From NCBI GenBank assembly GCA_002269645.1, contig NIVC01002207.1, positions 1 through 64,000 of the forward strand: DNA of 64,000 bases. The letters run 5' to 3'. Origin of the DNA: Macrostomum lignano (Eukaryota). Within the stretch, counting starts at the first letter, position 1. Every line of letters starts with the position of its first letter. Of this stretch, positions 44,701 to 49,812 are shown piece after piece. The translations under genes were made by a program, and so were the position numbers. The notes beneath the pieces are model-generated. The model had not been told where the DNA came from. It did no database searches and saw only the letters and a program-made list of their open reading frames with translations.

Positions 44701-47700
44701 AGCCTGTGTCAGAAGCAGCTGTCCCAAAAGCCTGTGTCAGAAGCAGCTGTCCCAAAAGCCTGTGTCAGAAGCAGCTGTCCCAAAAGCCTGTGTCAGAAGC
44801 AGCTGTCACAAAAGCCTGTGTCAGAAGCAGCTGTCCCAAATGCCTGTGTCAGAAGCAGCTGTTCCAAATGCCTGTGTCAGAAGCAGCTGTCCCAAAAGCC
44901 TGTGTCAGAAGCAGCTGTCCCAAAAGCCTGTGTCAGAAGCAGCTGTCCCAAATGCCTGTGTCAGAAGCAGCTGTCCCAAAAGCCTGTGTCAGAAGCAGCT
45001 GTCCCAAATACCTGTGTCAGAAGCAGCTGTGTCAGAAGCCTGTGCCAGAAGCAGCTATCCCAAATGTCTGTGTCAGAAGCAGCTGTGTCAGAAGCAGCTG
45101 TGTCAGAAGCAGCTGTGTCAGAAGCAGCTGTGTCAGAAGCAGCTGTGTCAGAAGCAGCTGTGTCAGAAGCAGCTGTGTCAGAAGCAGCTGTGTCAGAAGC
45201 AGCTGTGTCAGAAGCAGCTGTGTCAGAAGCAGCTGTGTCAGAAGCAGCTGTGTCAGAAGCAGCTGTGTCAGAAGCAGCTGTGTTAGAAGCAGCTGTGTCA
45301 GAAGCCAGCATCAAAAGCGCAGCTGCGTCAGCCAGCAGAAGCAGACAACAAAGTGTCGAATACTTTCCACAGGCATGCCTGGAGTTCGCAACAGCGCCAC
45401 ATACGACTGCTGCCCGCACCCGTTCATTGACCTGCAGTACAGCATTCGAGTCCGCAGGCGCAGGCTGTACTATTTATTCAATCTAATTGGGCCGTGCATT
45501 TTCATGGCCTGTTTGACCCTGCTTAGCTTCATCATTCCGCCGGATGCTGGGGAGAAAGTTAGCTTTGGTAGGGCCTCAATTTCTAAGAATTGCGAATGGA
45601 TGATCAGGGTGGCGTCAGTCTGAGAACTTCAACTTTCCTCCGTCTAAATAGTTTGTTGTAGTGTCTTTCAAGTGAATTTTCCTCAACCTGATCGTGTATA
45701 AATACGTGTCTGTGTAGTCTGCCAGCATGCGCAAAGTACCATCAATATCTAGCAGCTGCAAGTACATCCCAGCTATACATTGCATACAGTAGTTGCACTT
45801 TCATGATTTTTTATCCAAAGAAAAATCTTTTTAGCAGTTTTACTCTGTTAATTGTGTCTCCGTTCCAACTTGGCTATTAATTGTTTAGTATACAATCTGC
45901 CAATATAATACTATTGAATAGATAGACGCTGTACGATTTTCAACTTCTATTTTTAGTAACTTTCATATTACGTCATCGAGGCTATAGATAAGAAAGTTAA
46001 CGTTAATAAATCTTATTAAAACTAAACTTTAAGGTCGCGAGCTGCGTCCCAGACTAATTAGAAGTTACTTTGAAATACCTGTTGAATAAGATTATTAAAT
46101 AAACTGCAATTAATTGCATGCTGATGAAATGCGCGATACAAAACGATACGAGAACTCACGGCTCCCGTTCCGGTGCCCCTACCCGCCCCCCGAACCCGAC
46201 ATCCCAACCTGCAGGCATGGACGGGAAGAGGACGGCAGCTGAGTACGACTGCTGCCCATATCCGTTCATCGATCTGAGCTACTTCATTCAGATACGGAGG
46301 CGAACTCTGTACTATGGCATTAACCTCATTATTCCTTGCGTGCTCATCTCATCAATGTCGCTGCTCACCTTTGTTCTGCCGCCGGATGCCGGTGAAAAAA
46401 TCTCTCTTGGTACGTGTCTTAATCCTGTGCTGGATTTAGCAGAGCTGGGCTGTATAGAGTGGGTAAAAGTGGGTAAACTGCTTCTAGTATGGGTAAGCTA
46501 CCAGTTCAACCGGGAGTCTATGGGGAAAGCTACCTGTTCAACCGGGAGTCTATGGGGAAAGCTACCTGTTCAACCGGAAGTCTATGGGGTAAGCTACCAG
46601 TTCAACCGGAAGTCTATGGGATAAGCTACCTGTTCAACCGGAAGTCTATGGGGTAAGCTACCAGTTCAACCGGAAGTCTATGGGGTAAGCTACCAGTTCA
46701 ACCGGAAGTCTATGGGGTAAGCTACCTGTTCAACCGGAAGTCTATGGGGTAAGTTACCTGTTCAACCGGAAGTCTATGGGGTAAACTACCTGTTCAACCG
46801 GAAGTCTATGGGGTAAACTACCTGTTCAACCGGAAGTCTATGGGGTAAACTACCTGTTCAACCGGAAGTCTATGGGGTAAACTACCTGTTCAACAAAAAG
46901 TACGGTTAAACTGCCTTCTAAAATGAAAGACTTTTGAAATTCGATTGGAGAAGCAGCAGTTTTACCGGAAAAAGCTTCTGTATTTTAGCGGTAACAAATT
47001 GGACTAACCAACCGTGTAAATACCACAATAAACAGTTTAGTAAACTAGCAATCGAAATGCTGATTAAACAAGACAGTCTGTAAAAAAGAGGTGAGTTCGC
47101 AATTTCAATGAACCAACCATTCTACTCAAACCGCAATCCCCCGATCATGCTGCGCAATCGAAACTCATCCCAGGAGTGACAATTATGCTGTCACTGTCAA
47201 TGTTTCAACTGCTAGTGGCTGACGCTATGCCGCAGACGTCAGAGTCTGTGCCGCTAATTGGTGAGGCTTTCGTTGGCAACTCTGAGTGCTTTGCTTGGCG
47301 ACAGGAGTTCGGTTTGGTTTGCTGTTTTTTTATTAAAACCGATGATGGGGTGGTGGGCTGTCTCTGATGATTTTACGGCACAACTAACAATTGCCATGAT
47401 TTTGTTAATCATGCAAACGCCTTTTCAATATTCCTTTACGCATTTGCTTGATAACAATATTTTTTTACGTTTCTTAGCTTACCATTGGTGTTGCGTGAAC
47501 TCAGCAACACCGCTTGCTTGCTCTGTTTCAGTCGCCTTGGATTTGCTGCGCGCATGCTTTTGCCTGCAAATTTATCGACGCATCTTTTGACATTCTTTTT
47601 TTACCTACATTTTCCTGAAAATATTTTCTAACAGCGCGTGATGCCTTGCTCAAGTCGAAATAGGGCCTGGGGAAGGGAGAGGGGGCTGCTCAAACCAAGG

Positions 47701-49812: not shown

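Follow-up and report, generated by a model that had tools for sequence, protein, structure and literature searches.

Tandemly duplicated, probably alternative exons in an alpha7-type nicotinic acetylcholine receptor gene from Macrostomum lignano, a flatworm

The diversity of nicotinic acetylcholine receptors (nAChRs) is usually credited to many genes, and insect alpha6 shows that the pore can be diversified by exon swapping within one gene. Is the same principle at work in a flatworm, how are the exchangeable exons combined, and how old are they? These questions are raised by a stretch of 64,000 nt from Macrostomum lignano (contig NIVC01002207.1 of assembly GCA_002269645.1, positions 1 to 64,000; hereafter the window), in which the neighbouring exons 7a and 7b, and likewise 8a and 8b, resemble alternative versions of parts of an nAChR subunit. 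The reading that we favour, with a probability of about 0.8, is that of one alpha7-type nAChR gene with three tandem clusters of alternative exons (3a/3b, 7a/7b and 8a/8b), mostly one member of each being used per mRNA. A preliminary description, made from the sequence of the window, had placed the exon 7 and exon 8 pairs in a single alpha7-type gene of a flatworm-like genome, and this was borne out; its statements on isoforms and novelty had to be modified (see below).

Structure and identity of the gene

Exons 7a, 7b, 8a and 8b were confirmed by reading the sequence and by a script to lie where they had been described, with AG/GT splice sites, a single phase and no stop codons (Table 1); in all four, two bases at the start complete a Gly codon and one Gly-codon base stands at the end. 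Each exon 7 covers loop C with the vicinal Cys pair, the pre-M1 region, the first transmembrane helix (M1 or TM1), the M1-M2 loop and M2 positions -1' to 3', and each exon 8 covers M2 5'-20' and the M2-M3 linker, with the pore numbering taken from an alignment to the human alpha7 structure, in which exon 7 ends at M2 3'/4'. The earlier distinction between an agonist-site exon and a pore exon is approximately right, but exon 7 also holds M2 -1' to 3' and its type-specific residues lie in TM1. Exons 7a and 7b are identical at 38/64 amino acids in full codons and 121/195 nucleotides, and 8a and 8b at 17/28 amino acids and 63/87 nucleotides; counting the split Gly, the previously reported identities of 39/65 and 18/29 were reproduced. 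Differences within the pairs fall mostly at third codon positions (22/14/38 by codon position in exon 7 and 8/2/13 in exon 8), and over 150 nt on each side, the similarity between pair members does not exceed that of shuffled sequence, in agreement with the claim that the flanking introns are unrelated. A human alpha7 sequence, serving as a probe only, matched 7a, 7b, 8a and 8b at E = 5e-15, 5e-22, 2e-7 and 8e-8, respectively, in the 64-kb window, much better than chance would allow. Exon 3, which does not figure in the preliminary description, is duplicated too, with 3a and 3b identical at 10/15 amino acids in the beta1-beta2 region, so that adjacent exons of equal length, same phase and similar sequence, with splice sites, occur in three clusters.

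Outside these clusters, exons 1, 2, 4, 5/6, 9 and 10 were each found once by tblastn and splice-site inspection. Because all exons other than 3, 7 and 8 are single-copy, the locus was taken as one gene rather than two loci, and a reading as two tandem paralogs was rejected. The N-terminus of the transcript-derived model P0007 is 100% identical to exon 1 (tblastn), and the joined coding sequence gives an intact protein of 561 aa for all eight exon combinations. Both isoforms tested contain the Pfam domains PF02931 (Neur_chan_LBD, 1e-59) and PF02932 (Neur_chan_memb, 1e-50); the Cys-loop in exon 5/6 has its two Cys 13 residues apart, and the Cys pair in loop C reads YDCC (alpha-type YxCC) in 7a and 7b alike. 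The closest solved structures are those of human alpha7 (4e-128), with alpha3/alpha4 and others at about 1e-87 or weaker, and the database neighbours carry names such as alpha-7, alpha6 or acr-16-like, the best matches being proteins of M. lignano. The exon sizes of 45/110/195/87/110 nt, which correspond to the layout of CHRNA7, recur with the same phases in the nemertean Lineus longissimus, in an annelid-like contig (L003; ENA ERZ21781341 ctg60794l) and in a paralog. A Glu is present at M2 -1' (GEK) without the Pro insertion of anion-channel type, and the segments GEKVSF of 7a and GEKISL of 7b align to GEKISL of alpha7. By these features, the gene at 26718-49812 (+) encodes an alpha7-type, predicted cation-selective nAChR subunit of M. 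lignano.

Table 1. Features of the alpha7-type nAChR gene in the window
Feature	Position	Strand	Remarks
Exon 1	26718..26772	+	start codon, signal peptide plus 1 base; gtgagc donor
Exon 2	37468..37634	+	single copy; ctcgcag acceptor, gtgagc donor
Exon 3a	39192..39236	+	45 nt, alternative to 3b; AG/GT, phase 0; also in L007; in model P0008
Exon 3b	41008..41052	+	45 nt; AG/GT, phase 0; in transcript-derived model P0007
Exon 4	42116..42225	+	110 nt; single copy
Exon 5/6 (fused)	43127..43443	+	317 nt; Cys-loop, loop F insertion; GC-AG donor G/gcaagt
Exon 7a	45373..45567	+	195 nt; ccacag acceptor, gtaggg donor; divergent 'a' type, GEKVSF
Candidate RNA pairing arm A	45594..45624	+	27 nt downstream of 7a donor; hypothetical
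Exon 7b	46215..46409	+	195 nt; ctgcag acceptor, gtacgt donor; canonical alpha7-like type, GEKISL
Exon 8a	47174..47260	+	87 nt; cccag acceptor, gtgagg donor
Candidate RNA pairing arm B	47689..47719	+	69 nt upstream of 8b acceptor; hypothetical
Exon 8b	47788..47874	+	87 nt; atcag acceptor, gtgagg donor; canonical type
Exon 9	48957..49066	+	110 nt; M3; single copy
Exon 10	49213..49812	+	intracellular loop, M4, stop TGA

Two features of exon 5/6 are worth recording. Relative to human alpha7, ~23 residues with two extra Cys are inserted at ~43330-43400, after the Cys-loop and before loop C; trematode orthologues and the Macrostomum paralogs have a similar insertion that also contains Cys, and it may represent a flatworm-specific disulphide-bonded loop. 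The intron that follows is of the GC-AG type (donor at 43444, AAG/gcaagt), and with no other donor does the reading frame continue into exon 7. A role of the GC donor in the exon 7 switch was considered and rejected, since a paralog of 70% identity that has only 7b retains the same GC donor (locus L001, ~12969). As Lineus has GT at this position, the GC donor is best regarded as a trait of the Macrostomum lineage, outside the exon 7 switch.

Exon choice and the copies of the gene

Two GenBank BOX15 models, P0003 and P0007, hold 7b and 8a only, and P0007 also holds 3b. The BOX15 models derive from RNA-seq data assembled by StringTie/TACO with the genome as guide, to which mapped de novo transcripts were added, the isoform-fraction filter being set at 0.75 (PMC5730564); these transcript-derived models show 3b-7b-8a to be the dominant mRNA of the whole animal. 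P0003 and P0007 are truncated by indels in two other genomic copies of the gene, one in exon 4 of the copy on NIVC01002951.1 (L006) and one in exon 9 of the copy on NIVC01004192.1 (L007). In UniProt, the A0A1I8… models (P0001, P0002, P0005, P0008 and P0012) chain 7a to 7b and 8a to 8b, the 8a-8b intron being read through; as they stand, they describe impossible receptors with duplicated M1 and M2, and such concatenations of alternative exons should be corrected. A protein search with a 152-aa query spanning a 7a+8b junction returned short unrelated fragments only, and was uninformative, since it missed the known Macrostomum models as well.

In all likelihood, a mature mRNA contains a single member of each cluster; were both included, a membrane helix would be doubled and the four-helix topology lost. 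Exons 7a, 8b and 3a would then be minor or cell-type-restricted alternatives kept by selection. What an exchange of 7a for 7b would tune is probably not agonist recognition but gating, desensitisation, assembly or the sites of modulators, because the conserved difference sits in TM1 and M2 1'-3'. Within M2, 8a and 8b differ at 8' (M/L), 12' (S/T), 13' (M/V), 15' (Q/L), 16'-17' (LL/MM) and 20' (D/E), and in the M2-M3 linker they read PQTSES and PPTSDA, respectively. In alpha7, mutations at 13', 16', 17' and 20' are known to alter gating and the permeability to Ca2+. Functional divergence of 8a and 8b is plausible: since the swap alters pore-lining positions 12', 13', 16', 17' and 20' together with the M2-M3 coupling loop, it should have effects on conductance, gating and the permeability to Ca2+, in keeping with what has been proposed for exon 8 of insect alpha6.

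How the clusters are combined is a separate matter. In the preliminary description, the gene was expected to give up to four subunits in which the agonist site and the pore are swapped independently. The formal maximum, counting 3a/3b, is eight rather than four, and independent choice at each cluster, with all four combinations of exons 7 and 8 and eight with exon 3, has in our view slightly less than an even chance of being correct. It is consistent with the intact open reading frame (ORF) of every combination, with the Lineus isoforms X1, X2, X3 and X6, which combine 3a/3b freely with 7a/7b, and with insect alpha6, which combines variants of exons 3 and 8 (PMC1919356), but the transcript-derived models of Macrostomum document 7b+8a only, and its resolved paralogs hold 7b+8a or 7a+8b.

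The genomic copies bear on how the favoured alternative exons have been maintained. The window is 95-99% identical to L006 and L007, two loci of the same assembly, in which 7a, 7b, 8a and 8b are found in the same order, with 100% identical protein and the same intron layout; all four exons are also present in the older-assembly models P0001, P0002 and P0008. Between the window and these two loci, no substitution was found in the 564 positions of the four exons, as compared with 24/2237 and many indels in the adjoining introns. About 6 exon substitutions would be expected (joint Poisson P ~0.002; single exons were not individually significant). By the method of Nei and Gojobori, nonsynonymous (dN) and synonymous (dS) divergence amount to 0.35 and 2.6 (saturated) between 7a and 7b, with dN/dS 0.14, and to 0.23 and 0.77 between 8a and 8b, with dN/dS 0.29; for 3a and 3b, the corresponding proportions of differing sites are pN 0.14 and pS 0.98, dS being saturated. 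These low ratios, together with the unrelated flanks, indicate that the duplicate exons are old and kept by purifying selection, in line with the preliminary description.

Further paralogs in M. lignano have kept different parts of the set. One of 56% identity (par56; P0005/P0166) holds 7a-7b-8a-8b in order; parB (P0012) has 7a, 7b and 8a without 8b; in the models of parC (P0011/P0171), the 7a type is joined straight to the 8b type; and in the 70% identical paralog (par70; P0004, locus L001), the genomic locus is limited to 7b and 8a, its introns being too short to conceal other copies. This distribution indicates that the cassettes are older than the gene duplications within M. lignano and that the paralogs resolved them in different ways. 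Just upstream of exon 8a of par70 (L001 13982-14107) lies a short tandem array, the units of which resemble the beginning of exon 8 in translation (GVMIMLSH…); it has the appearance of a minisatellite that arose from the 5' end of exon 8a.

Repeats are also abundant in the window itself. Nearly every intron of the gene carries a long minisatellite, at 37670-38170, 38766-39109, 39456-40805, 41247-41734, 42315-43104, 44187-45305, 46491-46894 and 48084-48406, with periods of 4, 30, 21, 32, 10, 28/56, 32 and 39 nt, in this order, and copy numbers vary between the window and L006/L007. The array at 44.2-45.3 kb shows partial self-complementarity (CAGCTG core) and stops ~70 nt short of exon 7a. Downstream of the gene, the GC content falls abruptly to ~30% in the region 54000-64000, which has no ORF of at least 150 aa. 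A ~2-kb unit is repeated at least 3 times there (59052-59721, 61066-61722 and 63065-63721 match one segment of L006). A downstream block of 9.3 kb is 99.3% identical to NIVC01002951.1, and on that contig a predicted gene containing Rpb2 domains of RNA polymerase begins in the region equivalent to 54000-64000 and runs off the locus.

Age and spread of the exon pairs

In the preliminary description, no account of a duplicated loop C/TM1 exon was known, nor of such a cassette in a flatworm-like genome; the 7a/7b pair is not specific to flatworms, as it is common to a nemertean and annelids. The orthologous alpha7-like locus of Lineus longissimus (L002) contains two copies each of exon 3, exon 4 and the 195-nt exon 7, and one exon 8; the upstream exon 7 ends with GEKVSFG and the downstream one with GEKISLG, in the same phase as in Macrostomum. 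The RefSeq isoforms X1, X2, X3, X4 and X6 are all 480 aa long and swap 3a/3b, 4a/4b and 7a/7b. Each of 7a and 7b occurs singly in these isoforms, 7a being found in X3 and X6. With the Lineus 7a isoform as protein query, most matches were to arthropods; the only useful new item was X5 (415 aa), in which both exon 7 copies are skipped in frame. The Lineus exons 4a and 4b (L002 77553-77657 and 77715-77819) encode the loop A/beta2-beta3 region and form a further pair of alternatives, on which X4 draws; exon 4 of Macrostomum is single. Exon 3 pairs were noted in models of Lineus, Capitella, tick and prawn (P0024, P0050 and P0054).

In gene models of the annelids Capitella and Owenia, an a-type exon 7 is likewise followed by a b-type exon of the same length and phase, and more a-type exons and a+b tandems came to light on further contigs when the 7a peptide was used in an exhaustive phmmer search. 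On L003, the a-type (9998-10195) and b-type (10268-10465) exons are separated by only 75 nt, an intron that alone could block joining of 7a to 7b by steric exclusion, so that lineages may differ in how exclusivity is enforced; L004 has an a-type exon 7 only. The a-type exons share RRR(K/R/Q) in place of RRRT, the loss of a Gly after LYY, and GEK(V/I/L)(S/T)(F/C) in place of GEKISL. As to the novelty of the loop C/TM1 pair as such, the open-access literature yielded no nAChR for which alternative versions of the loop C/TM1 exon are described, and no account of alternative exons in flatworm nAChRs or of such clusters beyond arthropods, a provisional result as subscription papers were mostly outside the search; the same ordered pair was present in Lineus RefSeq entries, annelid models and further contigs. 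Two matches on the name proved unrelated: in Bombyx alpha8, which is another subunit, the 'alternative exon 7' goes back to a recent duplication of TM2-TM3 (PMC2045683), and an 'exon 7a' in a tick paper belongs to Rdl.

Neighbor-joining (NJ) trees with 200-300 bootstraps were built from the whole of exon 7, its loop-C half and its TM1 half. The TM1-half tree sorts by type: Macrostomum 7a groups with nemertean-type 7a in 0.40-0.60 of the replicates and never with 7b (0/200), and every a-type sequence but one degenerate copy falls in one group. The loop-C-half tree sorts by lineage, with Macrostomum 7a and 7b together in 0.37-0.39. Recent gene conversion was rejected as the source of this likeness: the loop-C halves are only 59% identical in nucleotides and differ at 15/26 third positions, as diverged as in TM1, and the likeness is therefore better ascribed to co-adaptation of the protein. 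This pattern indicates that selection has kept TM1 and the start of M2 distinct between 7a and 7b.

On balance, it is probable that 7a and 7b go back to one ancient duplication common to flatworms, nemerteans and annelids, and their origin most likely preceded the divergence of these groups. With a similar degree of confidence, the pair would be at least as old as the spiralian ancestor, having been kept for more than half a billion years, and exons 3 and 8 of insect alpha6 would be the remnant of a larger ancestral protostome set (3, 4, 7 and 8). Alternative-exon diversification of alpha7-like subunits may, it is suggested, be ancestral in protostomes and not an insect invention, and the conservation of a second TM1 type across phyla singles out TM1 as a part of homomeric-type receptors in which a tuning role is under selection.

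Several points tell against the account given so far. i) Exons 7a, 8b and 3a are absent from clean single-inclusion models of this Macrostomum gene, an absence all the same, though uninformative because the 0.75 filter drops minor isoforms, and the only models with 7a or 8b are of the older, ab initio style with both copies strung together. ii) All functional consequences are deduced from the positions of residues. iii) The exon trees use just 30-39 columns, with bootstraps of 0.2-0.6, and the tree of the whole exon 7 is ambiguous, with Macrostomum 7a joined to 7b in 0.26 of the replicates in the extended data set. iv) The pairs of flatworms, nemerteans and annelids may be independent duplications with convergent change in TM1, which we consider unlikely though deserving of some weight. 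Whole-exon and loop-C trees pair Macrostomum 7a with 7b and Owenia 7.1 with 7.2, and the bootstraps of a pan-spiralian 7a clade are low (0.1-0.4), but the a-type exon is upstream of the b-type in every lineage, the shared states RRR(K/R/Q), Gly loss after LYY and GEK(V/I)SF are unusual, and both the separation of Macrostomum 7a from 7b in the TM1 half and the lack of nucleotide homogenisation in the loop-C half, which fits protein-level co-adaptation, run counter to it.

For exon 8, NJ trees of 30 residues joined all four 8a exons of Macrostomum to trematode exon 8, which is single (0.375), and Macrostomum 8a and 8b were never together (0/200). Exon 8b groups with the canonical types, being identical at 27/30 residues to exon 8 of Lineus and Owenia and to insect alpha6 8a; 8a lies weakly near insect 8c and the 'ADALPQTSE' type of alpha7. 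A contig of Trichobilharzia regenti that starts at exon 8 has one exon 8 of the 8a type and no second copy before exon 9. From these comparisons, the 8a type appears as one common to trematodes and 8b as the general protostome type; the occurrence of both in the paralogs indicates that the pair is older than the Macrostomum gene duplications, and it probably also predates the split from the trematode lineage. In parasitic flatworms, related genes seem to have settled on a single exon type (7b-like with 8a), a point to bear in mind when free-living flatworms serve as models for anthelmintic targets.

Control of exon choice and comparison with known systems

What keeps two members of a cluster from being joined? 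As previously pointed out for exons 7 and 8, enforcement by reading frame or nonsense-mediated decay (NMD) is ruled out, since 45, 195 and 87 are all multiples of 3, and in Lineus X5 frame is kept even when both exon 7 copies are skipped. Steric hindrance is ruled out by introns of 647 nt between 7a and 7b and 527 nt between 8a and 8b, and U2/U12 incompatibility by the donors of 7a, 7b, 8a and 8b, all of which are U2-type GT. Exon choice is probably made by regulated competition between splice sites through cell-type-specific RNA-binding proteins and/or intronic RNA pairing; for such regulated choice in a two-exon cluster, unc-32 of C. elegans, reportedly an example (PMC3585155), serves as a comparison.

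A candidate for RNA pairing is the inverted repeat I1, of which the two 31-nt arms (A and B in Table 1) are 81% complementary. Stronger inverted repeats in the region were rejected as trivial, arising from the self-complementarity of a 15-mer minisatellite containing CAGCTG. If I1 formed a stem after 7a and before 8b, it would loop out 7b and 8a, and the gene would yield mainly an inner isoform (7b+8a) and an outer one (7a+8b). Such coupling of the clusters, which we rate as improbable, gains some support from a duplex energy of -43 to -45 kcal/mol and from the fact that the arms are reciprocal best partners within 5.5 kb and unique as a pair in the window; the transcript models with 7b+8a, the par70 locus with 7b+8a only and the joining of 7a to 8b in parC also fit. 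However, 8/100 dinucleotide shuffles match the ungapped score of I1 (P ~0.08), the reading was arrived at post hoc, and in L006/L007, the sole further copies (~99% identical), both arms are unchanged, which leaves no covariation to assess; moreover, parB combines 7a, 7b and 8a without 8b, and Lineus pairs either exon 7 with its single exon 8. If coupling were true, the gene would toggle two co-adapted M1/M2 modules, a new form of coordinated mutually exclusive splicing.

Still less likely is it that 7a and 8b are relics never spliced in, leaving what is effectively a plain 3b-7b-8a gene. The transcript-derived models and par70, which works with 7b+8a alone, could be explained in this way, but relics would hardly have kept uninterrupted frames, canonical splice sites and a low dN/dS while synonymous divergence reached saturation, nor would they be free of substitutions among genomic copies with differing introns, be kept in par56 and as the sole exon types in the parC models, or, as with the 7a type, be conserved across phyla and used in Lineus X3 and X6. 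An assembly artefact, i.e. a misjoin of two paralogous loci or collapsed haplotypes at 45.3-47.9 kb, is brought to mind by the highly redundant M. lignano assemblies with their many near-identical duplicated blocks (PMC5730564), but can practically be set aside, as the four-exon order and intron layout recur in NIVC01002951.1 and NIVC01004192.1, the same exons occur in older-assembly models, 7a and 7b differ at 38% of nucleotides and so are not haplotypes, the flanking exons are single-copy, and Lineus and L003 show the same architecture.

The favoured reading, one gene with three clusters and mostly single inclusion, can be set against known systems. Dscam, 14-3-3xi and human ATE1 7a/7b, with their competing RNA structures, offer a parallel to the candidate long-range intronic pairing beside alternative splice sites in the Macrostomum gene, and ATE1 is reported as a case of such control in a two-exon cluster (PMC7797038). 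The Macrostomum stem differs in being statistically marginal and in lacking demonstrable docking-site/selector architecture, conservation or covariation.

Alpha7-like genes of hemimetabolous insects and crustaceans also have two segments equivalent to the 195-nt loop C/TM1 exon per model (P0013-P0017, P0029, P0031, P0036, P0041 and P0054). Models with two loop C/TM1 copies come from termite, locust, cricket, bug, barnacle, lobster and prawn (those listed together with P0025, P0035 and P0037), and often have both in series, which would duplicate M1. These arthropod copies differ from the spiralian ones in that they lack the 7a signature, cluster with arthropods, and appear in RefSeq in series or as the first copy only; they are probably an independent duplication. 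The Lineus gene (X1-X6, XP_064652926 and others) is closer, with its ordered 195-nt 7a/7b pair, exon 3 pair and swaps of constant length, and differs by its single exon 8 of the 8b type and its 4a/4b pair; it is known from automated annotation.

Comparison with insect alpha6, already drawn in the preliminary description for exons 3 and 8, is apt. Insect alpha6 has mutually exclusive 3a/3b and 8a/8b/8c exons that predate the divergence of insect orders (PMC1919356). Like the Macrostomum gene, alpha6 (Dalpha6) belongs to the alpha7-like clade, which takes in vertebrate alpha7, insect alpha5-7 and nematode ACR-16, and has a 45-nt exon 3 and an 87-nt TM2 exon 8 of the same position, size and phase, as tandem duplicates under purifying selection. 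In both, the exon lengths are multiples of 3 and exclusivity is not enforced by frame; leaky double or null inclusion is reported in insects (PMC1919356; PMC2045683), transcripts with both or neither exon 3 being known for Bombyx alpha6 (PMC2045683). The differences are that insects have three copies of exon 8 and Macrostomum two, and that no loop C/TM1 (195-nt) alternative has been reported in insect alpha6.

Resistance to spinosad reportedly maps to the alternative exons of insect alpha6. The Macrostomum gene extends the principle of exon swapping to the loop C/TM1 module and to Spiralia, and as M. lignano is amenable to transgenesis and regeneration assays, isoform function is testable in vivo. 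These results should be useful for work on nAChR evolution, for splicing research and for the correction of annotation, without amounting to a new principle: tandem alternative exons were known for alpha7-like nAChRs, and what is new here is the loop C/TM1 module, the superphylum and the presence of three clusters in one gene.

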